The translations under genes and the position numbers were made by a program. From the NCBI GenBank assembly GCA_002269645.1, contig NIVC01000927.1:274066-306731 (forward strand): a stretch of 32,666 nucleotides of DNA, in the 5' to 3' direction. Below, piece by piece: positions 2,141-30,590 of this stretch; positions within the stretch are counted from its first letter, which is position 1; every line of letters starts with the position of its first letter. A model generated the notes under the pieces. The model was not told the DNA's origin. It made no database searches and saw only the letters and a program-made list of their open reading frames with translations. Source of the stretch: Macrostomum lignano. Lineage: Eukaryota.

Positions 2141-5100
2141 GTGAGTGTGGCTGAGTGACCCAGTCAAGTGGCTGAGTGACCCTGCGGTGGTGGCTGAGTG
2201 ACCCTGCGGTGGTGGCTGAGTGACCCTGCGGTGGTGGCTGAGTGACCCTGCGGTGGTGGCTGAGTGACCCTGCGGTGGTGGCTGAGTGACCCTGCGGTGG
2301 CGGCTGAGTGACCCTGCGGTGGTGGCTGAGTGACCCTGCGGTGGTGGCTGAGTGACCCTGCGGTGGTGGCTGAGTGACCCTGCGGTGGTGGCTGAGTGAC
2401 CCTGCGGTGGTGGCTGAGTGACCCTGCGGTGGTGGCTGAGTGACCCTGCGGTGGTGGCTGAGTGACCCTGCGGTGGTGGCTGAGTCAAGTGGCTGAGTGA
2501 CACGGCTCGCTGATTCAAGTGGCTGAGAGACCCTTCGGTGATGGCTGAATGTCCCTGCGTAATGGCTTATTCAAGTGGCTGAGTGACTAAGTGGCTGAGT
2601 GGCTGAGACAGAAGTCCACAGACCACAGAAGTCCACAGACCACATCCACTACCACAGAAGTCCATGTGGTAGTGGATGGGTGTTTCTGCAGTGTTGGCTG
2701 AGTCAAGTGGCTGTGTCCATAAGGGTTTGGTGAGGGTCAGTGAGAGTCAGTGAGGGTCAGTGAGGTCTTTTACATCGCAACCCGTTTCCAACCGCCCTCC
2801 TTCAACGCCAACCTGGCAGCTCCGTCACCGGATCCGGTTCGAAGTTTTCGGGTCCTGGCTGCGAATTCGACTGATCTCCAAATCTCCTGGGACCCGCCTG
2901 CGGCAGCGTCCGACTGCTTAGTGGTGCTGTGAGTTGCTGGACTTGGATTTATTATTGCTAATGTAGCTCATGGATTGCTAATGCAGCTCATGGATTGCTA
3001 ATGCAGCTCATGGATTGCTAATGCAGCTCATGGATTGCTAATGTAGCTCATGGATTGCTAATGTAGCTAATGGATTTTTAATGTAGCTCATGGATTACTA
3101 GTCTAGTTCAAGCACTAAGGCCGGGTTATAATAAACAGTTTGTTATTATCTAGATAGTTTATGAACTGGATTGCTAGTCTATCCAATGAGCAGAACAAAC
3201 ATTATATCTTTAAGTATCCGAAATATTGGATTCTTCTAGCTGATTGCTAAATTCTCATTTGACCTCCAATTATCATGGATAATTAATTGCAAACACACAC
3301 CATAATGCGAGAGCTTATGGCATGAGTCGGCTCTGGTAGAGAGAAAGAGAGCTTTGCTTTTTATAACTGGGCAAGGCAGCTTCGGCTGCTTTTTCATGGA
3401 GAAGAAAATTGTGCCGCATGACTGACTCATCCTGCTTTTGGGAGGGATTTTTTTGAGTGCTCCAGCTTCTCTGCCTCATCATCTCCCTTCCCCTCTCTCT
3501 TTGGCATCAATGACTCGCTAGAATTTCTGTGGAACAGGACTCTGGGAAGTCCCCCTCGGCCCCTTCCTTCTCAGCTCACTCTCCACTGGACACTCGAGTG
3601 GCCTTCGCTGTGGAGTGCGGACTCTGAAACTGTATGAGGCTGTAAGGAGCTTAAAAATGTGCAGGCTAGATTTTTTAAAAATTGACTGGCTAGGAATCAG
3701 CCTCTCGATCATTCACGCAGTTTTAGATTCGATTTTCCCAATACTGCCGTCATTTGGGATTGACATCGAGTGGCGCTCTGCATTGCTAGCAATCTGGACT
3801 TTCAAATTCAGACTGATGGAGATTGGAAATTGTTGCTTTAAGTAGGAATATGCTGAGCCTTAGCACCGAAGGACCCTAGCAACGAAGGACCCTAGCAACA
3901 AAGGATCCTAGCAACGAAGGACCGTAGCAACAAAGGACCCTAGCAACAAAAGATCCTAGCAACAAAGGACCCTAGCAACAAAACACCCTAGCAATAAAGG
4001 ACCCTAGCAACAAAGGACCCTAGCAACAAAGGACCCTAGCAACGAAGGACCGTAGCAACAAAGGACCCTAGCAACAAAAGATCCTAGCAACAAAGGACCC
4101 TAGCAACAAAACACCCTAGCAATAAAGGACCCTAGCAACAAAGGACCCTAGCAACAAAGGACCCTAGCAACGAAGGACCGTAGCAACAAAGGACCCTAGC
4201 AACAAAAGATCCTAGCAACAAAGGACCCTAGCAACAAAACACCCTAGCAATAAAGGACCCTAGCAACAAAGGACCCTAGCAACAAAGGACCCTAGCAACA
4301 AAGGACCCTAGCAACAAAGGACCCTAGCAACAAGGGATCGTAGCAACAAGGGACACTAGCACCGAAATACCCTAGCAACAAAGGACCCAAGCAACAATGG
4401 ACCCTAACAACAAAGGACCCTAGCAACGAAAGACCCTAGCATCAAAGAACTTCAACACCGAAGGAACCTAGAACAAAAGAGGCAGCACCAAGGACCCATT
4501 CCGAACCTCCTCGCCCACCGCGCAGTCTGCAGCTCCGCGACCTGACGCTGCAGTCGGACAGGCAGTTCAACGCCACCTGCTCGCCGCCAGCCGAGGGCCT
4601 TCGCCTGCGGGTCCACCCGCACCGACGCTACCGCCTGCTGGCCACTGTCCTGTCTGACTTCGGCCAGTCCCGTCCGGCCATGCTGAGCCTGCGGACTCCC
4701 TCGGCCAGGCCGAACCGGAGCCCATCGAATTTCACCGCTGTGGGCGCGAGCTCCGGCGCCCAGCTCACCTGGCTGCCGCCGCCGCTGCCGGGTCGCAATG
4801 GACTCCTGGTTGGCTACCGGATCCGCTACCGGGAGCTGCCGGCCGAGTCCGACGTCTCGGCGACCGCGCTCGGTGAAGATGCCGACATTGGCGATGACGA
4901 CGATGAAAGCATCGTCGATGGCGCGGTGTACAAAGTGACCGTGCCGGGCGATCAGCTGACTCACCGGCTGGCCGGACTGAAGCCGTTGAGACGCTACGCT
5001 GCTCAAGTGGCCGCCAGGACTGTCAATGGAACCGGCAGGTTCACCCGCTGGCTGGTGTTCAGCACCCTGCCCGGTGCCTACAGATTACGGCCTGCTAGTG

Positions 5101-8100
5101 AGTGGGTGGGAGAGTCTGTGGGATGGGGAAGTTCGGGTATGGGATAGTTTTGGGATGGGGAAGTTTGAGTATGGGATAGTTTTGGGATAGGGAAGTTTGA
5201 GTATGGGATAGTTTGGAATGGGGAAGTTTGAGTATGGGATAGTTTTGGGATAGGGAATTTCGGGTATGGGATAGTTTTGGATGGGGAAGTTCGGGTATGG
5301 GATAGTTTGGAATGGGGAAGTTTGAGTATGGGATAGTTTGGAATGGGGAAGTTAGAGTATGGGATAGTTTTGGGATAGGGAATTTCGGGTATGGGATAGT
5401 TTTGGATGGGGAAGTTCGGGTATGGGATAGTTTGGAATGGGGAAGTTTGAGTATGGGATAGTTTTGGGATAGGGAATTTTGGGTATGGGATAGTTTTGGA
5501 TGGGGAAGTTCCGGTATGGGATAGTTTGGAATGGGGAAGTTTGAGTATGGGATAGTTTTGGGATAGGGAATTTCGGGTATGGGATAGTTTTGGATGGGGA
5601 AGTTCCGGTATGGGATAGTTTGGAATGGGGAAGTTTGAGTATGGGATAGTTTTGGGATAGGGAAGTTCGGATATGGGATAGTTTTGGGATAGGGAAGTTT
5701 GAGTATGGGATAGTTTGGAATGGGGAAGTTTGAGTATGGGATAGTTTGGAATGGGGAAGTTTGAGTATGGGATAGTTTGGAATGGGGAAGTTCGGATATG
5801 GGATAGTTTTGGGATAGGGAAGTTTGAGTATGGGATAGTTTGGAATGGGGAAGTTTGAGTATGGGATAGTTTTGAGATGAGGAATTTCGGGTATGGGATG
5901 GGGTAGTTCGGGGATGGATAGGAAATACTAAAGATTGGGATGGAAATTTTGTGAACTGGAGAGTTTAGAGATGAAGGAAGCTTGGGGATCAATGGGAGGA
6001 AGAAGAGGAAGACTGCCTTTGAAAAGTCCAAGCCGAGGCCTCCCGCCCGGACCGCTCAGGACTGCGCGACCAGAATACCGAGTCGCAGCTTCACGGAGAC
6101 GTGCCGCTGCCGGAGAAGATCCGAATCCGGCCCAAGGATGTGACCGCCATCGGCAAGCGGGACTCCATCCTGCTGTCCTGGACGCGACCGTCTGCCCTGG
6201 TGATCCCCGACAAGTACGTCATCTACTATGGCAGCCAGCTGCCCAAGGAGAGGCTGGCTGGCGAAATCTCCGGCGACCAGGACGCCTATCAGATTCGGAA
6301 TCTCGGTGAGAACTCGCAAATTTTAGAGCTTTTTGGCTTCTCATAAGGAGATTTTGGAATCTAATAGTGAGATTTTGGAATCTAATAGTGAGATTTTGGA
6401 ATCTAATAGTGAGATTTTGGAATATCATGGTGAGCTTTTGGAATCACAAGGTGAGATTTTGGAATCTCTAATGAGATTTGGGAATCTCATGTTGTGATTT
6501 TGGAATCTCAAGTGAAATTTTGGAACCTCAAGTGAGATTTTGGAATCTCATGGTCTCATGATTTTGGAATCTCATGGTCTCATGATTTTGGAATCTCATG
6601 GTCTCATGATTTTGGAATCTCGTGGTCTCATGATTTTGGAATCTCGTGGTCTCATGATTTTGGAATCTCATGGTCTCATTATTTTGGAATCTCATGGTGA
6701 GATAATGGAACCGCAAGATAAGATTTTGGAATTTTATGGTGAGAATTTAGAATCTCATGGTGAAATTTTGGAATCTCATGTTGTGATTTTGAAATTGCAA
6801 GGTGAGATTTCGGAATCTCATTGCGAGATTTTGGAACTTCACGGTGAGATTTTGGAATCTCATGTGAGATTTTGGAATCTTATAGTGAGACTTTGTGATT
6901 TTAGAATCGCAAGGTAAGACTTAAAAATCTCATGTTATGATTTTGGAATCGCAAAGTGAGATTTTGTAATCTTATGGCAAGATTTTGGAATCTCATGTTG
7001 TGATTTTGAAATTGCAAGGTGAGGTTTTGGAATCTCATGGCAAGATTTTGGAATCTCATGGTGAGATTTAAAAATCTAAGAATAAGACAGAAATTCCAGG
7101 GTAGGATTTGAAAATCTACTGAAATAGCTAATACTCGTGCCAAGGACCACTATAGCAGAGAGAGGTACTACAGTAGTCCTTGACTCGGGCGTACGGGAAA
7201 GGGTCGAACCTGCATGAGACGCCAGGGTTGATGCTGAAAGCACTATAAACAAGAAATAAAACTCGTCTACAGTCTAAAAAATCACAAAATTTTCAAATTA
7301 CGAGCGCGCCTGCTTGAAATGATGATAAACAAAGTAAATTTCAACGCAAAATTTGATTGACATTCAAATTATTTTGTCAAAAATGTTCATCAGACAATAT
7401 CCATTAGGAACAAGTGCAGAGGCGAGACTTTGAATATGAGGAAGTTGAATAATTCTGGTCAATATTTAGTCAGGTAGTGCAAACACAATCCCAGTGTTGT
7501 TGCAGATGGAATGCATGGGGAACTCAGTTGCACTTCTGCCCAGTCCGCTGACTTCTGAGCACACGCACTCATACACTCGCTCACACAGGGTGTACAGCAG
7601 CCCCTGACTCTCTAATCGTCAAACATGTACAATCTGTGTGCCTTGGGGCTCGGCCCTTATGGGTGCGAATCGCACTACAACCCCCTGGCCAACTTTTGTG
7701 CTAAAAAACGCCCAAAAATTAATCTGACCTCGCACGAAATCGAACCAGGGGTCGAGGCGCGCTCAGCCCCTCCCGCAGCAGTCAGTAACCGCTTTACTAA
7801 CCCTGCATTGCAGTGCCCAACCAGTACTACTTCATCACCATTGTGGCCATCAAAGACGGAGTCCAGGCGGAGACGCCACTGCACGAGAAAACCCAGAGCG
7901 GGACCCGTAAGAAAATATTTAAACTATTAAAATCTTGTCTAGAGAGCTATTTATACTACTCACAGTAACGTTATTGCGCGCATGACTGTCTTTAATTAGT
8001 TAGCGGCGTAAATATTTCATTTTGAATGGTAGCATGAATATTGTTAATCTACGCTCATGTATGCTGTCAGCCTCCATGGCTCTTCTTCGTTGATAATATT

Positions 8101-11100
8101 TCTAGCTGGGGATACTCCTGTCTAACAGGTGACTCTCCTGTCTAACAGGTGACTCTCCTGTCTAACATGTGACACTCCTGTCTAACAGGTGACTCTCCTG
8201 TCTAACAGGTGACACTCCTGTCTAACAGGTGACTCTCCTGTCTAACAGGTGACTCTCCTGTCTAACAGGTGACACTCCTGTCTAACAGGTGACTCTCCTG
8301 TCTAACAGGTGACTCTCCTGTCTAACAGGTGACACTCCTGTCTAACAGGTGACTCTCCTGTCTAACAGGTGACACTCCTGTCTAACATGTGACACTCCTG
8401 TCTAACAGGTGACTCTCCTGTCTAACAGGTGACACTCCTGTCTAACAGGTGACACTCCTGTCTAACAGGTGACTCTCCTGTCTAACAGGTGACACTCCTG
8501 TCTAACAGTTGACACTCCTGTCTAACAGGTGACTCTCCTGTCTAACAGGTGACACTCCTGTCTAACAGGTGACTCTCCTGTCTAACATGTGACACTCCTG
8601 TCTAACAGGTGACTCTCCTGTCTAACAGTTGACACTCCTGTCTAACAGTTGACACTCCTGTCTAACAGGTGCCACTCCTGTCTGACCCTTAGGTACCCAA
8701 TCAAATCAGAGCTGTATTATAAAGTACAGTGACTCATTTATCCCATTTTATTGCGAATGCTACTACTATCAGCAACCATAAATATTAGACATTCCTGTTA
8801 CGTTTAAATGCATTAAACAACAATGTGGTGCGAATATGAATATATAATTGCAATATTATCAATGCAAACATCAATTACCAAACCTGCCCGTATGCTTCAT
8901 TTACAGGTGGTCAAACTTGTAAGTATGAGTATCGTTTTTTTTATTTAAACCGTTTTCTGTTGTCGTCAGAGCACAAATTTTTCTTCTACGAAACTACCGA
9001 TGTATACCAGACAAAGTCTGCTGGTGCACTTGTACTTTTAGAAGCGCAATTAAACTGAACGCAACCCAGCACCAACAAGTTCAAATCCATATGCTTTAAG
9101 CGTTTTGTCCGTTTTTATTCTGGCCCCGACAAATTTCTTTTCGGGGAGAGAAATAGCCAATTTAGTGAACCAATCTACAGAATGAGTTATTGGCTTTTCT
9201 TAAATTTCGGTGTAGGTTACGAAAAAACTTATATACTACTTATAATCTGCATGTATTTAGCTGGAAAGCGAGCTGGTCTCAATAGTGTGTCAGCTCCCAC
9301 TGACCCCTGACTGACAGAAGTGTGTCAGCTCACACTGACCCTGACTGACAGAAGTGTGTCAGCTCACACTGACCCTGACTGACAGAAGTGTGTCAGCTCA
9401 CACAGACCCTGACTGACGGAAGTGTGTCAGCTCACACTGACCCTGACTGACAGAAGTGTGTCAGCTCACACTGACCCTGACTGACGGAAGTGTGTCAGCT
9501 CACACAGACCCTGACTGACGGAAGTGTGTCAGCTCACACTGACCCTGACTGACAGAAGTGTGTCAGCTCACACTGACCCTGACTGACAGAAGTGTGTCAG
9601 CTCACACTGACCCTGACTGACAGAAGTGTGTCAGCTCACACTGACCCTGACTGACAGAAGTGTGTCAGCTCACACAGACCCTGACTGACGGAAGTGTGTC
9701 AGCTCACACAGACCCTGACTGACGGAAGTGTGTCAGCTCACACTGACCCTGACTGACAGAAGTGTGTCAGCTCACACTGACCCTGACTGACAGAAGTGTG
9801 TCATCTCACACTGACCTTGACTGACAGAAGTGTGTCAGCTCACACTGACCCTGACTGACAGAAGTGTGTCAGCTCACACAGACCCTGACTGACGGAAGTG
9901 TGTCAGCTCACACTGACCCTGACTGACAGAAGTGTGTCAGCTCACACTGACCCTGACTGACAGAAGTGTGTCAGCTCACACTGACCCTGACTGACGGAAG
10001 TGTGTCAGCTCACACTGACCCTGACTGACAGAAGTGTGTCAGCTCACACTGACCCTGACTGACAGAAGTGTGTCAGCTCACACTGACCCTGACTGACAGA
10101 AGTGTGTCAGCTCACACTGACCCTGACTGACGGAAGTGTGTCAGCTCACACAGACCCTGACTGACGGAAGTGTGTCAGCTCACACTGACCCTGACTGACG
10201 GAAGTGTGTCAGCTCACACTGACCCTGACTGACAGAAGTGTGTCATCTCACACTGACCTTGACTGACAGAAGTGTGTCAGCTCACACTGACCCTGACTGA
10301 CAGAAGTGTGCCAGCTCTACAGACCCTGACTGACAGAAGTGTGTCAGCTCTACAGACCCTGACTGACAGAAGTGTGTCAGCTCAGACTGGCCCTTCCTGT
10401 CAGCTCACACTGGCTCTTCCTGTTAGTCACACTGGCCCTGTCAGCTCCCACAGATCTGTACTCTCGCGAATTTCCGCAGACGACCGGCAGTCGCCCAGCG
10501 TCCCGCTGAACGTGAAGGCCACCGTCATGGACGGCCGTACAGCGGTGGTCAGCTGGACAGACCGGGACCTCGGCCTGCCCGGCTCGGACGCGGCCGGCCG
10601 CCTTTACGAAGTCGAACTCGCCGAGGATGCCACCTCGTCCAGATCGTCCTCGGCTGTCGTTGACGCGAAACCGCGCCGATTCAACACGACGGGGCTTCGA
10701 CTGCGGCTGTCCCAGCTGCGCCCGTTCACCGCCTACGCGGCCAGGATCCGCTGCCACCTGGGCTACATGCAGAGCGACTTCAGCATGGTGGCCACCTTCG
10801 TCACCAAGGCTGAGCCGCCGGGCACGCCGCCACTGGAGCTGCGGGTGGCCCGCACCAGCCTGTCCGGCTCCGTGCTGCTCACCTGGCGGCCGCCGCTGGA
10901 GCCGAACGGGCCGCTGACTGGCTACACAGTGTACTACGCTCCTCACGGCGGTCAGTTCATCAGCCGCAACGCCGCGGCTAAGGAGACTCAAATTGTTGTC
11001 ACCGGTCTGCAGCAGTCCAGTCTGTATGTGTTCAAGGTGCGCGCCGAGAACCAGGCGGGCGTCGGGCCGGCCACCAACTTGACAGCATTTATGACGCCGG

Positions 11101-14100
11101 ATGGTGAGTTCGAGGAGTGAGGTGGCTGCGGAGTGAGGTGGTTGCGGAGTGAGGTGGCTGCGGAGTGAGGTGGTTGCGGAGTGAGGTGGCTGCGGAGTGA
11201 GGTGGCTGCGGAGTGAGGTGGCTGCGGAGTGAGGTGGCTGCGGAGTGAGGTGGTTGCGGAGTGAGGTGGCTGCGGAGTGAGGTGGCTGGCGGAGTGAGGT
11301 GGCTGCGGAGTGAGGTGGCTGCGGAGTGAGGTGGTTGCGGAGTGAGGTGGCTGCGGAGTGAGGTGGTTGCGGAGTGAGGTGGCTGCGGAGTGAGGTGGCT
11401 GCGGAGTGAGGTGGCTGCGGAGTGAGGTGGTTGCGGAGTGAGGTGGCTGCGGAGTGAGGTGGCTGGCGGAGTGAGTTGGCTGGCGGAGTGAGGTGGCTGG
11501 CGGAGTGAGGTGGTTGCGGAGTGAGGTGGCTGCGGAGTGAGGTGGCTGCGGAGTGAGGTGGCTGGCGGAGTGAGGTGGCTGGCGGAGTGAGGTGGTTGCG
11601 GAGTGAGGTGGCTGCGGAGTGAGGTGGCTGCGGAGTGAGGTGGCTGCGGAGTGAGGTGGCTGCGGAGTGAGGTGGCTGGCGGAGTGAGGTGGCTGCGGAG
11701 TGAGGTGGCTGTGGAATGAGGTGATAAATGGGGGCTAGGATAGCAGTTTAGCACTGCATCAGCCTATCAAGCTTGTTATTCTTTAAACTGCCAACCCGCA
11801 GCAAACGGATACGGCGGCGGCATGGTGCTTGACGCAATTGCAGGATCAGGATCCCAATGTAAGCATAAAGTGAATGGTCAAGCTTTAGTTCAGCAACAAT
11901 ATCGATACCATAGCGTAGCTAAACTTACTTTTTCAGCCGACCCCCCTCTGCAAGCGGCCAGCTCGCCGGATTCCGAGAGCGACCGGAAGCTGTGGTTCGT
12001 CATCGGCGGCGGATTCGGCCTAGCGATTGTGCTCCTGATTGTTGCCATAGCAACCGTTTGCCTCTGTCGAAGCGGCGAGGCAGCGGGCGGCACCGGAGGA
12101 GGCGGCGGCCGCCGGCGCAGACAGGCGGACCGGGCGGCCAAGGAGGAGGCGAGCCTGATTGGTCAAGAGGCGGCAGCCAATCAGCGGCACCCGGGCTCGC
12201 CGCGAGCTCGTTCCGGCAAGAATTCGCCAGACGCGCAGGCGGCGGCGCTGCTGATTTCGACAGGCGGAGGCCAGCACCAGCTGCAGCACCAGCAACAGAC
12301 GCCAGACCTCTGCCGCCGGTCGGAGAACTGCCTGGAGCTGCGGCACCTTCCACAGGCGGGCCGTGGCGCTGACGGCCCTGTAGGTGGACCGTTCGGCCGG
12401 AGCTCGGTGCACCCGCCGCACCACCTGGGCGGCGGCCACCTCGGCCTCGGAGGCGGGCGCGGCTTCATGGGCGAGCCGCTGCTGCTCGATCATCCGGGCG
12501 GCGCGTCGCCGAACCCACCGGGACACTTTAGGAACATCTCCAGCTCCGGGCTTTACCCGCCGGGGACGCCGCCGTCCTACCAGCCAGGCGCTGCTGCTGC
12601 TGCCATCGGGGCTTCGTCGAGAGGCCTCGCCTCGCCGCCGCGAGTTGACGCGCCCGACTTCAGCTCGGGTGAGCCGCGGCCTCGGTGTACATGGGCTGCT
12701 GTGGGGGTTCTCGTTGTACATTGGTGTCGAGAGGGGGCGTCAATGTACATTGGTGTCGTGAGGGGGGTGTCAATGTACATTGGTGTCATGAGAGGGTGTC
12801 AATGTACATTGGTGTCGTGAGGGGGGTGTCAATGTATATTGGTGTCGTGAGGGGGCGTCAATGTACATTGGTGTCGTGAGGGGTTGTCAATGTACATTGG
12901 TGTCGTGAGGGTGGTGTCAATGTACATTGGTGTCGAGAGGGGGGTGTCAATGTACATTGGTGTCATGAGGGGGTGTCAATGTACATTGGTGTCGTGAGGG
13001 GGGTGTCAATGTACATTGGTGTCATGAGAGGGTGTCAATGTACATTGGTGTCGTGAGGGGGGTGTCAATGTACATTGGTGTCGTGAGGGGGCGTCAATGT
13101 ACATTGGTGTCGTGAGGGGTTGTCAATGTACATTGGTGTCGTGAGGGTGGTGTCAATGTACATTGGTGTCGAGAGGGGGCGTCAATGTACATTGGTGTCA
13201 TGAGGGGGTGTCAATGTACATTGGTGTCGTGAGGGGGCGTCAATGTACATTGGTGTCGTGAGGGGGGTGTCAATGTACATTGGTGTCGTGAGGGGGGTGT
13301 CAATGTACATTGGTGTCGAGAGGGGGGTGTCAATGTAAATTGGTGTCTAGAGGGGGCGTCAATGTACATTGGTGTCGAGAGGGGGGTGTCAATGTAAATT
13401 GGTGTCTAGAGGGGGCGTCAATGTACATTGGTGTCGTGAGGGGGGTGTCAATGTACATTGGTGTCGTGAGGGTGGTGTCAATGTACATTGGTGTCGTGAG
13501 GGTGGTGTCAATGTACATTGGTGTCGTGAGGGGGGCGTCAATGTACATTGGTGTCGTGAGGGGGGCGTCAATGTACATTGGTGTCGTGAGGGGGCGTTAA
13601 TGTACATTGGTGTCGTGAGGGGGGCGTCAATGTACATTGGTGTCGTGAGGGGGCGTTAATGTACATGGCTGCTGTGTGGGGAAGCTACACCGCACACAAC
13701 TAAACAAGCTACACCCTCACTCGTTCCCACTCGCAAGCAGGCAAGCTGTCCAGCCCGCACTCGAGTCTCAGCTCTTCTATTGGTTCGCCATCCAAGCGAC
13801 GTCCGTCTACATCGGCGGCGGCGGCGGCGGCGTCTACAGCTGCACCGACGCTCATGCTGGCGTCGCTAGGCAACGGTCGCTCAGTCAACGTAACGCCGGA
13901 CATTCTCAACCCGCCCGTTGCCCGTCCATCGCGCAGCCTGCACGGCGGCAACGGAGGCAGCGGCGGCGGCGGTGGCAGCGGCGGTGGCCTCAGCGGCGCG
14001 TATAACGGAGGCGGCGCTGGTGGAGGCGGCGGCGGCGGATCCACATTCGACAGTGAGACGTCAAGAAGTGTATGTACCATCGGTGATCATGTTCCATAAT

Positions 14101-15240: not shown

Positions 15241-19762
<4,522 letters not shown>

Positions 19763-20210
19763 TCGAGTTGTCAATGGATGCCAAATTCACTGCGGGCTGA
19801 ATCTGCCGAGAGGCGTAACGCGCGGCATCCCTAAAAAATCCCTTCGTCTCCGCCCGGGTTTCCCCTTTTTTCTCCTGGCCCCACCCGCCTCCCACAGCGC
19901 ACTGCTCAAATTCACAACAGTTTCGTCCTTTCGCTTGCTCGTGCTCTGCTTCGACAGATTTCATTGGCTCAAAAATCTCTTTTGCTGGCAGAGGGCGCGG
20001 GCAAGGGAACTCCCATCGGCTGTCCTGTCCCTGCCCTCTTCCCCATCCTCTTTTAGCTACTTCTTCTCCATATTTCAGAGCGCGGCACGGGCCGGCCTCA
20101 AGCCTCTGTTATATACTAGCAGATAGAGCTCACCTTATCCACCTCCCAGCTTCACTTGTTCTTCTTCATGCTCCGGTGCTGCTCATGCGTTCTAGTCTCT
20201 CCGCCCTCAC

Positions 20211-21548: not shown

Positions 21549-23177
21549 ATTGCAGCTGTATATAGAGAAAGAAATAAATTGTGAGGAAAATGTCACAGAC
21601 AAAAGATTTTTAATTCTCCATCTGAAAGAAGTGAGTGACTTGCATGGGCTGTTTTTGGCTAATTGTATATTATATACGGTATGCGACTATGAACACGTCG
21701 CATATTCAGACTGGGCAAAAGCAGCAAGAGCAATTAGCATATAAATATAAATTAAAATAAAGTTAGGATTTGCATTGCTCAGTACAATAGAGTAGTATCA
21801 TGCGCACATATATAGTGCAGCTAAATCTGTTACAAAGCCAGATATATTAATGTTTTAAAGCAGATGTGGCAGCACGAAAAAGAGAGGACGCGGTGCACTT
21901 TTAATAGCGATCGTAGCACAAAACTAGGTGTGTATAAATAAAATTTTAAAAAGTTTGAGAACCCAGAACCAACAGTGCCGTCAGGACACTTAATTAGGAA
22001 AATCTAATTATGAATAAAAATTTATTAAATACCAAGATGAATTCTGTGACAATGCCGATTTTTTCAATAACGATACAAAACGGAGAAATGCCAAATAACG
22101 CTAGTAATATTCCATACATGCTACTATCTTAGAGAGAGATGCGACAGTAGTGCAGTTAGTTTTACAAGAAACCCTCAAAATGGTATTTAAATTATAAAAT
22201 GGTAATTAGAGTTCAATGAAAACAGAAAGAGTTACCAGAATTGGCAAATTATGAAAATATAAAGAAATAAAAATTATTTAAGGCGACAGCAGGCACAACA
22301 GAGGCCGGTTTGATTAATTTATTTAATTAGTTTCATCAGTAACGCAATCACGGAGAGGGGAGACACACAGACACGAAAACTGATGTCGGAAGGTGAGAAA
22401 GCGCGCGCCGTGTCTTTGTGTGTACGATGCATTTAAACTACTCAAAGTAGGTCGGGAAACTACGATTATTAGAAATTTTTAGGAGGCAGGATTTACTGAA
22501 AACCACAAGAGAACCACAGAGAAATGGAGATCGGTGAGCCAAGCGCTGTAAAACAAATATAGTATCATTATAACAAAACAAAAAAACGCACAAGGCAGAT
22601 AAAGCTGTATAAAAAATAATAATAACTATTATTATTATTATTACCAGGGCAAAGAAAGCGTTAAAAAATTGCACATTAAATTTGTTAATTTATAACAAAA
22701 CAACATGATTTTCACTTCCGGATTTGTTGCAATGCAGTTCAACAAACAAAAACCAACTGGGCAAAAATGAGATAAAAATTTGCAAAACAAAAAATAACAA
22801 ACAATTTTTATACACCAGAGAAGAAACGGTTGCAAAAGTGCAAAGCCTTTTTTGTTTAAATATTTTATTTGATAGTCAGAGATCTGCTGAAGATGCATAG
22901 ATCAGCGAGATTGTGCTTGCGAAGATTCCCAGTGCTGCATGGCGAAAAACAGCAATTAAAAAACAGGATATATGCCAGCTGCTGTACCAATTATAATTTT
23001 GACTGAACAGTTAGGTACAAAAATGTTGTAAAATTTAGTTTAAATTAATATAATACACACGCCACACACCTCCGAGATGAGGGGCCGCCACCAGTCACTG
23101 ATAGACATCTTTTAGCAAAAGTAAAAAGTACAGATTGTCCTTTTAATAAGAGAAATTCTTGCAGTCTCATTTCACGA

Positions 23178-24095
23178 CATTGAGGGTTGGAGTTCATTCC
23201 TCAAGATTGAAGTTTGGGGTTCGATTCCCAGACATTGTGGGTTGAAGTTCAATTCCTCAAGATTGAAGTTTGGGGTTCGATTCCCAGACATTGAGGGTTG
23301 AAGTTCATTTCCCAGGATTGAAGTTTGGGGTTCGATTTCAAGACATACATTATGGGTTGGAGTTAAAATCCTCAGGATTGAAGTTTGGGGTTCGATTCCC
23401 AGACATTGTGGGTTGGAGTTCAATTCCTTAAGATTGAAGTTTGGGGTTCGATTCCCAGACATTGAGGGTTGAAGTTCATTTCCCAGGATTGAAGTTTGGG
23501 GTTCGATTTCAAGACATACATTATGGGTTGGAGTTAAAATCCTCAGGATTGAAGTTTGGGGTTCGATTCCCAGACATTGTGGGTTGAAGTTCAATTCCTT
23601 AAGATTGAAGTTTGGGGTTCGATTCCCAGACATTGTGGGTTGGAGTTCAATTCCTCAAGATTGAAGTTTGGGGTTCGATTCCCAGACATTGTGGATTGAA
23701 GTTCAATTCCCCAGGATTGAAGTTTGGGGTTCGATTCCCAGACATTGAGGGTTGGAGTTCAATTCCTCAAGATTGAAGTTTGGGGTTCGATTCCCAGACA
23801 TTGATGGTTGAAGTTCATTTCCCAGGATTGAAGTTTGGGGTTCGATTCCCAGACATTGAGGGTTGGAGTTCAATTCCTCAAGATTGAAGTTTGGGGTTCG
23901 ATTCCCAGACATTGAGGGTTGAAGTTCATTTACCAGGATTGAAGTTTGGGGTTCGATTCCCAGACATTGTGGGTTGGAGTTCAATTCCTCAAGATTGAAG
24001 TTTGGGGTTCGATTCCCAGACATTATGGGTTGGAGTTAAACTCCTCAAGATTGAAGTTTGGGGTTCGATTCCCAGACATTGTGGATTGGAGTTTT
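23178..24095. repeat. 55/56-bp minisatellite (dimer of a 28-bp monomer), 16 units, each carrying GGTTCGATT(C/T)C
   Basis: Unit gattgaagtttggggttcgattcccaga + cattgagggttggagttcaattcctcaa. I counted 16 ggggttcgatt, of which 14 are followed by CCC. Confidence 0.95.
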
Positions 24096-24201: not shown

Positions 24202-24723
24202 TCATGGATCGTGAAAAATCTGAGTAGCCATAATCTCGCCCGTGCTAAGAGTCTGCGTTGCCATAGTGACCATTTTTCTACCACCGTTACAGGCGGCCGG
24301 CGTAGTTGGCGCCTGACAACGCGAGCAGCAGCCGCCGCTTGTCGAACGCGATGGCGTCGGCTGCGGCGGCTGCTGATGCGGCGGTGGCGGCGGCGGCTCA
24401 TCCTTGCCTTCGGAGAGGTCGGGCGTCAGCACAGGCGACGGCACGGAGCTGCTAGTCCGACTGTCGGCGTCGTCCTGCAGCACCCGGCGCAGCTCGGTCT
24501 CGTCAATGTCGGACAGGAATTTGATATCGTCGGCCAGCTCGAGGCTGTCCAGCGGTTCGGGGCCCAGCGGACTCTTGACGGCCGAGGCGGCGGCGGTCAG
24601 GGCTCCGCCGGACAGGCGCTCCATCACGGCTCGGTCGGCCTCCTTCCAAACCTGAGTAGCGCGCCATTTAGCGCGGCTCTCCTTTGGCGCCAGGATGGCG
24701 TTGAAGTACAGAATCTCGTTCAT
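24202..24723 (-). CDS. egl-like gene exon 5 (end of OB-like domain, disordered tail, TQT motifs, stop)
   Basis: Acceptor ccccactccag|24723 (phase 0). Encodes [28 protein letters not shown]...[22 protein letters not shown], with TGA at 24204-24202. Confidence 0.85.
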   Translation of the reverse strand: MNEILYFNAILAPKESRAKWRATQVWKEADRAVMERLSGGALTAAASAVKSPLGPEPLDSLELADDIKFLSDIDETELRRVLQDDADSRTSSSVPSPVLTPDLSEGKDEPPPPPPHQQPPQPTPSRSTSGGCCSRCQAPTTPAACNGGRKMVTMATQTLSTGEIMATQIFHDP

Positions 24724-27700
24724 CTGGAGTGGGGCGGTTAAATAGGCTAGATTATACGGATGGAGGGGCGGATATGAGGGGCAGAGGATAGGAGCGGATG
24801 AGGCGCGCTGGAGCGGGTATTGTCATTTTCCACGAGGGTAAGATGCTCTTCCAGGAAAGTCTGCACCTCGGTGAGAACACCTCGGTTTTCCAAGCAGAAA
24901 TTTGCGCCATTGAGCAGTGCGCCCAGCACCTGCTCCAGGTGAATATTAATAACTTCAATATTAAATTTTACACTGATAGCCAAGCCGCTATTAAGGCCTT
25001 AACCACTGAGAATATCTCCGCTGCTACAGTATATCAATGCCACCGCAGTGTGCAATCCCTCTCAGTCCTTAACAGGATTAGAATTATCTGGACACCTGGT
25101 CACAGCAACATCCTGGGCAACGAGCTCGCGGACTCTCTCGCCAAGGAGGGCAGCAACCCAGACGGCAACCACCGTCTGATGAGGCTACCCCCCCCCAGGT
25201 CGCAAGTCACCCGCCATATCAACAGGTGGCTCCATCAGCAGCACCAGCTCCACTGGTACAGCTGCACCGAGTACAGGCAGACCCGCTCTGCCATGCCTAA
25301 CCTGAACAGGAAAGTCTCTGATTATCTGATTTCGCTTAACAGAACAGACCTCAGGGAGATGTGCATGGTCCTAACCGGCTATGGATTCTTCCAGAGACAT
25401 ATATCGTTGCAAACCGGTTGCCCTCCCACCTGTCCTTTCTGTGGCATAGGAGAGGAGACCGCGGAGCATCACGTCACCTTCTGCCCTTACTTCAACAAGG
25501 CGCGGCACAAATACCTCGGCCACCCCCAGCGGATGGACGAGCTGACCACCCCGGACAATATCCGTGACCTTCGCGCCTTCATCCGGGACTCCGGCCAGAT
25601 TAGGGTCGCCGATGCCTCCACTGCAAACCTGCCGACTACAGGCGGGGACTGGGCGCACCCCCAAGGTTAATCCTTGTGCTCTTTTATTTTGGGGTTGCGA
25701 TAGGGGCCTCGCGGCTCCTGCGCCCCCCCGTCAGTAGTAAGTAAGTAAGTAAGTAGGAGCGGATGAAGGAGCGGATGAGTGGATTAAGGGGTGGAGGGCA
25801 GGAGCGGATGAAGGGGCGGATGAGCGGATGAAGGGGTGGAGGGCAGGAGCGGACGAAAAGGGGATATGAGGAGCGGAGGAACGTAGGGGCGGATGTCTGG
25901 TAGGGGTGGAAAGTGGAGTAAAGAAGGGAATAAAACTGATGGAGTCCAAAAGATGGATTCCACTATAAATGGCATTCTAAAATGAATTAATGCCTTAGTA
26001 TAATTAGTTCACCTTAAAGTGCTTCTGCAAATCGTCCACGTGTTTAAAGATGGACTTGTCAAAGAACACGTGCTCGTGCCGGCCCAGATCGATGATGCCC
26101 CACAGTCTGGCGCAGTGGAACACTCGGCCGCGGCGATTGGTCAGCGTCCGGGGCGCGGTTTGATCTACGCCGGCAGAGCCGCCGCCGGCGCCGGACTTGC
26201 CGTCTCGGTTGGAGCGCCGGCCGCCGGTGATGATGATGTTGAGCTTCTGGGCGCGCCGGCAGGACACTGAGCCGTCGGCCGGGTGAATGTCGAAGAATAG
26301 GGACTGTTTGCGCAGGAATTCTTCCAGCTCGATCTGAGTCCAGCCGATTAGATTGCGGGCCTGCTCGGCGCCTTCGCCGGACCTGGCCGAATAAAAGTAA
26401 CAGGAAGCGAGCTTCATTGGCGAGCTCGAATCGGCATGGGAAGGGGGCGGACGGAGAGAGCGGGTGGAAAAGGGGGAGGATTGGAACAAAGAGGGGGGCG
26501 GAAAGAAGAGGACTGAAACTAAACGGGGCGGAAAGGGGAGGATTGGAAATAAAAGGGGCGGAAAGAGAAGAATTGAAACAAAGAAGGGGGGCGGAAAGGA
26601 GAGGACTGAAACTAAGAGGGGCGGAAAGGGGAGGATTGGAAATAAGAGGGGCGGAAAGGAGAGGACTGAAACTAAAAGGGGCGGAAAGGGGAGGATTGGA
26701 AATAAAAGGGGCAGAAAGAGAAGAATTGAAACAAAGAAGGGGGCGGAAAGGGGAGGATTGAAACAAAGAAGGGGGCGGAAAGGGGGAGGATTGAAACAAA
26801 GAAGAGCGGAAAAGGGGAGGATTGAAACGAAGAAGAGCGGAAAGGGGGAGGATTGAAACGAAGAAGAGCGGAAAGGGGGAGGATGGAAACGAAGAAGAGC
26901 GGAAAGGGGGAGGATTGAAACGAAGAAGAGCGGAAAGGGGGAGGATTGAAACGAAGAAGAAGAATCAGGAGGGCGTAATCAGGGGCAATGGAAACGGAGA
27001 ATAGGAGTGGGAAACTGAAAGAATCGAGTATTCAAGAACAAACTAGCAAGTCTTCTCTACCGAAAGGCGTTCGAATAAATTTCTAGAAAAAAATAGAACG
27101 CAGCTAAGCAATGTCTGTAAAAGAATCTGCGACATCATCGAGCTGGCAGCATTTCAAGCTGGGACAACGCGTTGTCAACAATATTTAAGCGAACTTCGAC
27201 ACGTTCCAACACGAAAGATCTGAGAGGAGAAATCGACAGCTTTTGTTTCCATTTTTGACTAAGGTTCAACAGTCCATAGATGCGTAGACCATCAGCAATG
27301 AGTCATGCCAGTCCTGGCTACCCAGTTACCCAGGTGCTGCTATTTCAAAAATCCGTATATTCATACGCGCATAAAGTGCAGGAAAATTCCAGTAAGAGAC
27401 TGACGTAGCTTAAAACTTTTCCTATCTAGAAGCTTAAAGCCTCTCTAATCCAGTGGCTGAGAGAGAGGGGGGCAACTAAATGAATGCGCATCTTCGCATC
27501 ACGTGAACCGCTGCATAGAGGCTGCAGCGCCGCCACTTCAGCCCAACCCCTCCCCTAACCCTCCCGATCCCAAAACTGATTGGAATTTGCGCAGAAAACG
27601 CCTGCAAAAGCAACCACCGCAATGGCATCCGTAGCACTGTATATATATGTAGCCATTTGATTTCTACTGTAAACTAGTCTAATGTAAACTCCAGCGGCAA

Positions 27701-30590
27701 GCCCATCTATTACATTACACTAAACAAAGAGTTATAAAATAGCCGAATTACCTAGACAATACGGAGAACAGCTGCGGTATGGACAATAAGCCACCCTTTC
27801 GTTCGAGCACTTTGCGCAGAAACATGACAGTTTTGTATTCGGCCGCCGTCATGCTGACTGGCCCGGCGCCGCCACTGATGCTGCTGGAGAGGCCGCCGCC
27901 GCTGCTGCCGCCAGGGCCAGCTGTTGATGTTGGCGTTGTTGGCAGCGACTTGCCTGCGGGTTGGACAATCGGGACAGTGTTAAACTGTATTGATAGCAGT
28001 GCTCTGACAGACGAAATGGGGATCGGATCTAGTAGACCTAGGATCGGATCTAGTAGGTCTAGGATCGGATCTAGTAGGTCTAGGATCGGATCTAGTAGGT
28101 CTAGAATCGGATCTAGTAGGTCTAGAATCGGATCTAGTAGGTCTAGAATCGGATCTAGTAGATCTAGAATCGGATCTAGTAGGTCTAGAATCGGATCTAG
28201 TAGGTCTGAATCGGATCTAGTAGGTCTGAATCGGATCTAGTAGGTCTAGAATCGGATCTAGTAGGTCTAGAATCGGATCTAGTAGGTCTAGAATCGGATC
28301 TAGTAGGTCTAGAATCGGATCTAGTAGGTCTAGAATCGGATCTAGTAGGTCTAGAATCGGATCTAGTAGGTCTAGAATCGGATCTAGTAGGTCTAGAATC
28401 GGATCTAGTAGGTCTAGAATCGGATCCAGCAGGTCTAGGATCGGATCCAGCAGGTCTAGGATCGGATCTAGTAGGTCTAGAATCGGATCTAGGAGATCCA
28501 TATTCTGATCTATGAGACCGAGAATAGCTACTAAAGGATGCCTCACCTGAGCTACGCTGATCGCCAGAGCAGCTTGGCATAACGAGACTCTTAGGCCGGG
28601 CCATTCGAGCCGACTGCGAGTGATGCAGGCCGCCGCCGAGGTTGCCGCTGCCGCGATTCCTCGACTGCAACTGCTGCTGCTGGTGCCGCTGCGAGGAGCC
28701 GCCGCCCCCGCTGCCGCCGCTCAGGCAGTGCGCAGCAAACGTGTCCCGCAAGCCAACTAGCTCGCCTTGCAATTCGAACACGTGCCGATGCCTGGCCAGA
28801 AACCTGGCAAACTCGGCCTGCGGTCCCACCACGGCTCGAATCTCTGGCGGCGCCTGGCTGAGATGCCCGGCTAAGCTTTTAATTGGCACCCAGCGGTCCT
28901 CGCGCCGGCTAAGCCGGGTCTGAAAGAACCGGACCGCCTCAGTCTCGCGGGCGAAGTCGTTCGGATCGCCGCTAACCGAGTGCAAAGCGGCGGCCGCGTC
29001 GGAGCCGGACCTGGCCGAGTTGTTCGAACCGATGGAGTCGCGCGCGGCCGCCGTTGTGATGCTGCGAGCGGCCGCTGCCAGTTGATGAAGCCGCCGCCGC
29101 CGCCGCAGCCGCTTGAGCAGCCGCGGCAGCCATCGTCGAACTCGACGAAGACGACGAGGCCGCTGTCGCCGCGGCATCGCCGCTGATCTGCGAGAGTGCG
29201 CCGTCCAGACTAACGGCAGAGACGGACTCGCCGTTCACTCGAAACAGCGACGGATATTTCTGCAGGAAGGGCTTGAGCCCGCCGGCCGAGGCCACGGCCT
29301 CTCGCATGTCTTGGGTGAAGTGCCGGCTGTGGAAATGCTGCGACAGCGACGTCAGGCGGACGCCGTCGGGCGAGTCGACATTCATGAGCACCTCAAGAAA
29401 ATAGAGCATAGACCGGTGCGCCGGGTCGCCCATCATTTTGTAGAGGAAAACCTCGCGCGACTTCAAGTAGGACAGGCACGACTGGGCGTCTGAAATGAAC
29501 GAAATGCAATTATTATAGATAAATATAGAACTACTGACAGTAGCGCAATTGGACATGTTGCATATAAATGATTTTTCAGCAACACAGCATAAACTTTAAA
29601 AAAAGGTTAATTAGCTTTCCAGAGCCCCATAGCTAGAAACAAAACGTTTCCTTTTTAAAACAAAACTTATTTATCTTTTGAGGCAGATAAGCCGGTGATA
29701 AAAGAAGAAAATAATGACTAGTTACGAAAGAAAAACTGAAGGAAACTTTGTTAGCGCGAGAGATGGCGGCCCAAAACTGGAATTCCTTAAGCTTCAGTCT
29801 TAACTCTACTCTTGTTAGAACAGAATTCTTCAGTCTGTCTAGTTAGCTAAGCATGCACACGGACCTGTCGCTAGTCCGCCCTGCCGTAGTGCTTGCGGCA
29901 ATAAATAGATAACTTCAACCAAAGAACCAACCCTCATAATGACGTCACGTGCAAGCTGGTACGTAACAATCATCGTCAAAGATGTACGCTTCTATAATGT
30001 ACGAGTTTGGTAGGTATTGTGTTTCACGGGTGCCTGTTGGCATATCATGCACTTGTTGCTCATACGGGGGAATTGTTGAGATATTGAGATGCCATTGCTA
30101 AGGGAGGGGGGGAATTGCTGAGATGCCAATGCTAAAGGGGGGGGGAATTGCTGAGATACTGAGATTCCAATGCTAAAGGGGGAATTGCTGAGATGCTGCC
30201 AATGCTAAAGGGGGGAATTGCTGAGATGCTGCCAATGCTAAAGGGGGAATTGCTGAGATGCTGCCAATGCTAAAGGGGGGAATTGCTGAGATGCTGCCAA
30301 TGCTAAAGGGGGAATTGCTGAGATGCTGCCAATGCTAAAGGGGGAATTGCTGAGATGCTGCCAATGCTAAAGGGGGGAATTGCTGAGATGCTGCCAATGC
30401 TAAAGGGGGGAATTGCTGAGATGCCAATGCTAAAGGGGGGAGTTGCTTTCAGTGCTGATGCTTGGTTGCTTTAAATGTCTTATTCTTTAAGAAACTCACC
30501 AGTCACGTCTGTTGGGTCGCCATCGCCAATAGGCGTAGTGGCGGCCAAATTATTTGGCACTTGTTGAGCTTGCTGCGGTGAACTGGTCAT
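24202..30590 (-). CDS. Egalitarian-like protein (3 winged-helix domains + cold-shock/OB-like domain + C-terminal TQT motifs, no exonuclease domain), about 708 aa if the frameshift is corrected: complement(join(24202-24723,26013-26382,27752-27953,28547-29489,30500-30590))
   Basis: Junction phases are 1,1,2,0 and all introns are GT..AG. The exon sum of 2128 nt is 3n+1, matching a visible frame switch in exon 2. WH1 MLYFLEVL...[16 protein letters not shown]...[15 protein letters not shown] and WH2 [13 protein letters not shown]...[13 protein letters not shown] resemble the recalled Egalitarian N-terminal repeats. Confidence 0.78.
24802..25753 (+). mobile_element. 5'-truncated non-LTR retrotransposon (RNase H-bearing LINE, LOA/R1/I-group-like), antisense in the last intron of the egl-like gene
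   Basis: The ORF to TAA at 25670 has RNase H motifs [33 protein letters not shown] (first catalytic Asp lost to truncation) and a CCHC knuckle [15 protein letters not shown]. There is a short 3' UTR and a (GTAA)4 tail at 25737-25752. TAGGAGCGGATGA is duplicated at 24789-24801 and 25754-25766. Clade assignment is inference. Confidence 0.9.
25754..25900. repeat. Degenerate purine-rich repeat (ggagcggatga), the target of the LINE insertion; its left remnant is at about 24755-24801
   Basis: The same motif lies on both sides of the LINE. Confidence 0.75.
26013..26382 (-). CDS. egl-like gene exon 4 (end of WH3, start of OB/cold-shock-like domain)
   Basis: Acceptor tttattcggccag|26382, donor aag|gtgaac at 26012. 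Encodes [23 protein letters not shown]...[39 protein letters not shown]. Confidence 0.85.
26440..26965. repeat. Purine-rich minisatellite of about 30-33 bp (ggggcggaaaggggaggattgaaacaaagaa)
   Basis: Direct inspection; polypyrimidine on the host gene's sense strand. Confidence 0.9.
27752..27953 (-). CDS. egl-like gene exon 3 (Gly/Ser linker and first half of WH3; not called in the ORF track)
   Basis: Acceptor caacccgcag|27953 (phase 1), donor ag|gtaatt at 27751 (phase 2). Encodes ...[33 protein letters not shown]. Confidence 0.8.
28020..28500. repeat. 21-bp minisatellite (tctagtaggtctagaatcgga) in egl-like intron 2
   Basis: 7-aa periodicity (RIGSSRS / SDSRPTR); two 20-bp deletion variants near 28200-28240. 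Confidence 0.96.
28547..29489 (-). CDS. egl-like gene exon 2 (WH1, linker, WH2), containing an apparent +1 frameshift near 29030-29060
   Basis: Acceptor ttcatttcag|29489, donor ctcag|gtgagg at 28546. WH1 is in the frame of ORF 28972-29556 and WH2 is in the frame of ORF 28197-29177. Confidence 0.78.
30065..30445. repeat. Minisatellite of about 29-32 bp (gggggaattgctgagatgctgccaatgctaaa) in egl-like intron 1
   Basis: Direct inspection; variable G-run. Confidence 0.93.
30500..30590 (-). CDS. egl-like gene exon 1 (predicted)
   Basis: ATG at 30590, [30 protein letters not shown], strong donor g|gtgagt at 30499 in phase 1 matching the next acceptor. An alternative start is the MM at 29436. Confidence 0.6.

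Follow-up and report, generated by a model that had tools for sequence, protein, structure and literature searches.

A five-exon gene on the minus strand of a 32,666-nucleotide stretch of the Macrostomum lignano genome (contig NIVC01000927.1, positions 274,066 to 306,731; "the window" below means this whole stretch) is, on its sequence, the M. lignano member of the Egalitarian-like (Egal-like) protein family. The gene occupies 24202-30590, and its product consists, in order, of three Egalitarian winged helices, a 77-amino-acid beta domain of five strands, and a disordered tail with a dynein-light-chain motif at the C-terminus. High-confidence structure prediction makes the beta domain an S1/cold-shock-type OB barrel. 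The structure of the gene, the domains it encodes with their predicted folds, the conserved motifs and the family membership are documented here, and it appears somewhat probable that the protein is an adaptor like Drosophila Egalitarian (Egl), linking selected mRNAs to dynein for their microtubule-based localization.

The family, and effectively the window gene, is already known. In Schmidtea mediterranea, the planarian gene dd_8302 was named Egalitarian-like-1 (Egal-1), with the paralogues Egal-2 (dd_6723) and Egal-3 (dd_7434); these proteins were described as having three N-terminal modules, a conserved central region of 67-71 amino acids common to spiralians, no clear exonuclease site and, at the C-terminus, a dynein-light-chain motif with 75% identity to that of Egl (PMC12579938; Development 2025). 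The same study left the fold of the central region unnamed, did not mention OB or cold-shock folds, and considered a degenerate exonuclease domain as an option. RNA interference (RNAi) of egal-1 led to ectopic notum at posterior wounds, as did microtubule poisons, and a phenotype was found for egal-1 alone, which wounding induces in longitudinal muscle and which acts in notum polarity (PMC12579938). The homologues listed there in Table S3 include Mlig021118.g1 (PAA56698.1), a copy with 98% identity to the window gene. The original prediction for this locus, which had put the gene forward as the window's best candidate for a novel system, was thus anticipated in 2025, together with a planarian RNAi phenotype. 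The window protein has the three winged helices, the central region of about 70 amino acids and the dynein-light-chain motif of the family, in addition to this published listing. It shares with S. mediterranea Egal-1/2/3 the winged-helix modules, the central region, the C-terminal motif and the N-terminal extension of flatworms (CLxYLK..LYKMM), and differs in belonging to another species and in being another paralogue. In BLAST comparisons with the truncated sequences of Table S3, identity was 44% over 272 amino acids to egal-2, 39% to egal-1 and 59% over the second winged helix to egal-3, and egal-2 is the closest planarian counterpart in this partial comparison. What is new here is a fold for the central region, the retention of the RNA-reading residues of the second Egl-type winged helix (ED2) beside the loss of those of the first (ED1), and the observation that OB and exonuclease types never co-occur in 271 relatives; these additions are modest.

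The relationship to Egl was evident in both sequence and structure searches. Pfam found three WH_Egal (PF23713) domains in the window protein (E=1e-53) and nothing further above threshold, and a phmmer search of Protein Data Bank (PDB) sequences returned Drosophila Egl (9rvy and 13 further entries, E=6e-13) in a match spanning ED1, ED2 and the last 24 residues. AlphaFold2, run with a 48-sequence alignment, gave three confident winged helices, a confident beta domain, linkers that are long and disordered, and a beta hairpin at the C-terminus. When the whole model was submitted to Foldseek, chains from the Egl-BicD-RNA cryo-EM structures came first (E=4.5e-9), followed by S1 and cold-shock OB folds. 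The proposal that the three repeats are Egl winged helices is therefore supported by Pfam, phmmer and Foldseek alike, and the first winged helix (WH1) is, by its alignment, the counterpart of the first Egl domain, which binds Bicaudal-D (BicD) and RNA. The exonuclease domain, which the original prediction had called absent, was indeed not found: the window protein had no match to PF01612 in Pfam, and none to a model of the exonuclease-homology domain (ExoHD) and XAD built from arthropod Egl. Between the third winged helix and the OB domain lies a short strand motif, KLNIIITG (residues 458-465, approximately 26246-26223, minus strand), which is nearly invariant in the family as [KR][LMI]N[VI][IV]ITG and is predicted to form a beta strand.

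Recent structural work describes Egl as consisting of ED1-ED3, ExoHD, XAD and a dynein-light-chain site, with ED1 binding the BicD segment CC3; U-A pairs in the minor groove of the RNA are read by ED1 His31/Cys35 and by ED2 Gly124/Ser127/Gln128, and RNA binding does not need ED3 (PMC13186709, 2026). These residues were compared in an alignment of 15 proteins drawn from both architectures, five of them exonuclease-type. The counterparts of Gly124 and Gln128 were identical in all 15, and Ser127 was present in 14, the window gene included; the ED2 motif reads SL[LA]GH[RL]SQA across the alignment, the second M. lignano paralogue (P0012) alone deviating, with Gly at position 127. In each of the five exonuclease-type proteins (fly, worm, scorpion, tardigrade and whipworm) the ED1 pair is His/Cys; its counterparts are Thr/Gln in the window protein, in most spiralians Ser/Gly, and in planarians acidic residues. 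With the ED2 residues kept and the ED1 pair replaced, RNA reading of the ED2 type is probably retained and that of the ED1 type probably not.

The C-terminus provides a further link to Egl. The last 24 residues of the window protein align by phmmer to Egl 957-980 (VVKLVDAESQTLSTGDVVITKIFF), and the consensus [AC]QT[ILV]STG[DE]I[IL]ATQLY is kept in almost all full-length relatives. The tail had been described in the original prediction as disordered, but it is not disorder alone, as it ends in this conserved Egl-type motif. The motif had been overlooked, and its presence supports the Egl-like dynein adaptor reading that the same prediction had offered.

The central domain was assigned to the OB fold by structure prediction, because a search of PDB chains with a sequence profile of the domain gave chance-level matches only (E ~0.4); the same profile, run against a word-indexed protein collection, retrieved ten short fragments only and no distant named relatives. 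Modelled alone by AlphaFold2, the beta domain (residues 464-548 in the close homologue P0001) had a predicted local distance difference test (pLDDT) score of 92, five strands and one short helix. Foldseek matched it to OB folds only, with probability 1.0, E ~1e-2, identity of 11-22% and template-modelling (TM) scores of 0.58-0.67; the matches were the S1-like domain of DBC1, the cold-shock domains (CSDs) of Unr, YB-1 and Lin28, S1 domains and the LysRS anticodon-binding domain, and for the YB-1 CSD the TM score was 0.65-0.67 with a root-mean-square deviation of 2.6 from the predicted model. Within the family, conservation is highest in the beta domain, where 24 of 80 columns are invariant and identity to other members is 58-87%; the domain also matches the central regions of planarian egal-1 and egal-3. 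Its most invariant stretch is the beta2-beta3 face, which in CSDs binds nucleic acid. The DUF7930 (PF25558) profile gave sub-threshold matches in three of 23 family members (best E=0.005), and an indirect link to it runs through the multi-OB protein P0212, in which the repeat at 810-889 matches the OB domain model (E=1e-7) and overlaps a DUF7930 match that scores 36 bits, the cut-off being 27.

By homology with Egl, we infer binding to BicD, LC8 and RNA and a role in transport. WH1 would dock on the C-terminal coiled coil of BicD, and the TQT-type motif at the C-terminus would bind the dynein light chain LC8, which would help dimerization. The second helix of WH2 would enter the RNA minor groove through its Gly-His-Leu-Ser-Gln-Ala motif, and the OB barrel, standing in for the clamp that ExoHD and XAD form in Egl, may give a second RNA contact, probably with a single strand or loop. 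In this way the protein could couple selected mRNAs to dynein for localization along microtubules. The common outcome of egal-1 RNAi and microtubule poisons, ectopic notum, fits a microtubule-linked role.

Several observations weigh against such an adaptor. The pair His31/Cys35 is replaced in every OB-type protein aligned, and ED1 may therefore not touch RNA here. The authors of the planarian study call the biochemical similarity to Egl unclear (PMC12579938), and the window copy has a frame-breaking extra base, which is taken up below. For the OB domain, no match to the CSD profile (PF00313) was found at E up to 10 in 23 family members, nor for the full protein, and the S1-like profile (PF14444) matched weakly in one of the 23 (E=0.04, sub-threshold). 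The cold-shock/OB-like domain that had originally been proposed thus stands as a predicted fold but not at the level of sequence. Much the same applies to the proposed echoes of RNP1 and RNP2 in WGII and HVFF: in a hand alignment with E. coli CspA, LWGII and HVFFD do coincide in position with RNP1 and RNP2, but of the six classical aromatic or His positions only about two are kept. In addition, the best Foldseek match, the DBC1 S1-like domain, stems from a study of a protein-protein interaction (DBC1/SIRT1).

These points raise an alternative, which we consider unlikely, that the OB domain is a protein-interaction module, and that the protein is either a BicD/LC8-linked adaptor for protein or organelle cargo or a regulator outside transport. 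The DBC1 match, the missing CSD profile with its partly kept RNP aromatics and the lost RNA-reading residues of ED1 would all suit such a module, as would the distribution of planarian Egal-1 protein along muscle fibres and its lack of a known RNA partner (PMC12579938). However, the strict conservation of the ED2 RNA-reading motif would then need another reason, the structural neighbours of the domain are mostly RNA-binding S1 and cold-shock domains, and its invariant residues lie on the face that is used for nucleic acid in CSDs.

The gene model behind this protein is complete apart from a single base. Every junction is GT/AG, the ATG lies at 30590 and the stop codon TGA at 24204-24202, in exact agreement with the limits first drawn for the gene, and all peptides quoted in the original prediction were recovered on the minus strand, in open reading frames (ORFs) between 24202 and 29556, and joined into one five-exon gene. 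Intron 3 (27751-26383) interrupts WH3 and intron 4 (26012-24724) the OB domain. The exon lengths total 2128 nucleotides, one above a whole frame, and the frame switches in the Ala/Ser-rich part of exon 2. Removal of the extra base at 29044 yields a 2127-nucleotide open frame and a protein of 709 amino acids, whose best database match, at 98% identity, is M. lignano BOX15_Mlig021118g1 (P0001), from contig NIVC01002588.1; its identity to Mlig000003g2, a second M. lignano paralogue, is 43%. In blastn comparison with the other M. lignano assembly, exon 2 also has four substitutions and a 12-nucleotide in-frame indel. The original prediction spoke of a corrected protein, and a correction is indeed needed because exon 2 carries this one base too many. 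The possibility that a small intron restores the frame was considered and rejected: the sole GT..AG candidate is 39 nucleotides long and cannot repair the frame, as 39 is a multiple of three.

The extra base may be either an assembly indel or the mark of a disabled copy. Uncorrected, it shifts the frame downstream of WH1 and leads into a stop, and the assembly holds at least two copies at 98% identity that differ by small indels; the window copy might then be a non-functional allele or homeologue, disabled at 29044, with the intact copy on NIVC01002588.1 doing the work. This is improbable in our judgement, given that the extra base is the sole disruption, the splice sites and the other 708 codons all being intact, and that it lies within a GC-rich low-complexity run. 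In long-read assemblies, base miscounts are frequent in such runs.

When 1.84 billion representatives were searched with a full-length profile, 475 relatives were returned, of which 150 were inspected. Among the database matches of the window protein, full-length relatives, of about 600 amino acids, occur in nemerteans, annelids, molluscs and one brachiopod, and the versions in parasitic flatworms have 900-1200 amino acids; almost all are annotated as "Egal-1 winged helix domain-containing", as hypothetical or, wrongly, as EXD1. A precomputed Pfam accession, PF26288.1, is attached to some of them (e.g., P0021, P0027, P0040). Architectures were counted over 271 relatives, with incomplete sampling: 165 matched the OB model, 43 matched the ExoHD-XAD model, and none had OB and exonuclease in one protein. 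The named OB-type proteins are from spiralians, including Seison, a rotifer relative, and the named exonuclease-type proteins from arthropods, tardigrades and nematodes only. As the named proteins of the two types split by clade, and the types never co-occur in one protein of this incomplete sample, a single ancestral gene with lineage-specific central modules fits better than two paralogues existing side by side.

The term paralogue, used in the original prediction, is accordingly doubtful, and it is very unlikely that flatworms also have a true paralogue of this gene in the form of a canonical, exonuclease-bearing Egl. Only 150 of the 475 profile matches were inspected, and several OB-type paralogues do exist in flatworms, both of which leave some room for that proposal. 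However, none of the 43 exonuclease-type proteins with a name is spiralian, the 271 relatives include no protein with both domains, and in the planarian study three OB-type genes were found, with no report of a spiralian protein combining winged helices with an exonuclease domain (PMC12579938).

A sea-urchin protein from Table S3 of PMC12579938 was considered as a carrier of both modules. By eye it seems to have an OB-like N-terminal segment, with a winged helix and an exonuclease domain after it, and the idea was dropped because the domain model gives no support (E=0.65). No clear deuterostome homologue was found in the published study (PMC12579938). A 2119-amino-acid protein of Branchiostoma belcheri, XP_019619473 (P0154), has nine WH_Egal domains and, after them, an AAA-type ATPase, and the winged-helix module is therefore not confined to protostomes. 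XP_014669431 of Priapulus caudatus (P0171) is related but distinct: it combines four OB repeats with several ED2-like helices and carries the same motif at its C-terminus. It belongs with P0172, P0155 and P0212, which as a group have several ED2-like winged helices, 2-6 OB repeats and a C-terminal QT..TG motif, a multi-OB variant of the architecture that is unmentioned in PMC12579938.

A broader reading of the family can be put forward only tentatively. OB-type Egal-like proteins may be true BicD-dynein mRNA adaptors that read stem-loops via ED2 and, via the OB barrel, a neighbouring segment that is single-stranded or a loop; in fly and worm Egl, the exonuclease-XAD clamp would then reflect a lineage-specific module replacement within one ancestral protostome gene, and multi-OB, multi-ED2 proteins such as that of Priapulus would be further variants. 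Through planarian egal-1 and the asymmetry of notum, the family ties flatworm regeneration polarity to the mRNA-dynein adaptor that is best understood. To our knowledge, no mRNA localization adaptor has been defined in spiralians, and the predicted OB barrel and the kept ED2 motif offer concrete domains and mutations through which RNA and dynein binding could be addressed there.

Besides the planarian proteins, the closest known systems include Drosophila Egl and C. elegans EGAL-1 (PDB 9RVY-9RWB; PMC13186709), with which the window protein shares ED1-ED3, the ED2 GH(R/L)SQA motif and the C-terminal SQTLSTG site. It differs from them in having a 77-amino-acid OB barrel instead of ExoHD (PF01612) and the four-helix XAD, and in the replacement of ED1 His31/Cys35. 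With YB-1, Lin28, Unr/CSDE1, ribosomal S1 and DBC1/CCAR2, the predicted domain shares a five-stranded barrel in which a short helix follows strand 3 and precedes strand 4, but its identity to them is only 11-22%, and RNP1 and RNP2 are no more than echoed, in LWGII and HVFFD. A relationship to C. elegans LIN-66, which had also been suggested, found no support in the literature, LIN-66 being compared here by published descriptions only. By those descriptions LIN-66 includes a cold-shock domain that is required for function, flanked by low-complexity sequence, and is restricted to nematodes, without homologues elsewhere; the CSD is what it shares with the predicted CSD-like OB fold of the window protein, whereas it has no winged helices, and nematodes have the exonuclease-type EGAL-1.

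Table 1. Coordinates of the Egal-like gene, its encoded domains and other features of the window.
Feature	Position	Strand	Remarks
Exons 1-5 of the Egal-like gene	30590-30500, 29489-28547, 27953-27752, 26382-26013, 24723-24202	(-)	Spliced translation continuous apart from one base
WH1 / ED1 (aa 55-123)	29212..29418	(-)	Pfam WH_Egal; aligns to Egl residues 11-76; pLDDT >90
Extra base in exon 2 (one)	29044	(-)	GGCCGCGCGCGAC in the window vs GGCCG-GCGCGAC in NIVC01002588.1 (blastn of exon 2)
WH2 / ED2 (aa 210-279)	28743..28952	(-)	Pfam WH_Egal; bears the conserved GHLSQA motif; pLDDT >90
WH3 / ED3 (aa 380-457)	26247..27849	(-)	Third WH_Egal stretch; split by intron 3; pLDDT >90
Central OB domain, S1/CSD-like, predicted (aa 490-566)	24631..26150	(-)	Split by intron 4; pLDDT 92, Foldseek, conservation
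C-terminal motif of dynein-light-chain (LC8) type	24205..24276	(-)	Alignment to Egl 957-980 covers the SQTLS site; predicted beta hairpin
Retrotransposon fragment, 290-aa ORF	24798..25670	(+)	RNase H (Pfam E=8e-10) and weak zf-RVT; inside intron 4, antisense to the gene
434-aa ORF with leucine-rich repeats	18470-19774	(-)	LRR_6, LRR_4; same-strand upstream neighbour
Fibronectin type III exons	1870-2154, 4680-5147, 10272-11120, 11822-12820	(+)	An apparent transmembrane segment comes after them, with a low-complexity tail

The element in intron 4 is, from its domain matches, a fragment of a non-long-terminal-repeat (non-LTR) retrotransposon and lies outside the protein. The UniRef model A0A1I8I3F0 (P0002, "Phosphodiesterase I") wrongly includes an antisense translation of it. 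Elsewhere in the window, the ORF at 18470-19774 probably encodes a protein of the F-box/leucine-rich-repeat type, and the plus-strand gene with fibronectin type III exons looks like a receptor-like protein of that class. Long minisatellite arrays, with periods of 16-56 nucleotides and 10-38 copies, occupy nearly every intron and intergenic stretch (e.g., 28022-28492, 26473-26959, 30066-30447 and 23176-24093, among many others), and they give rise to many spurious long ORFs on both strands.

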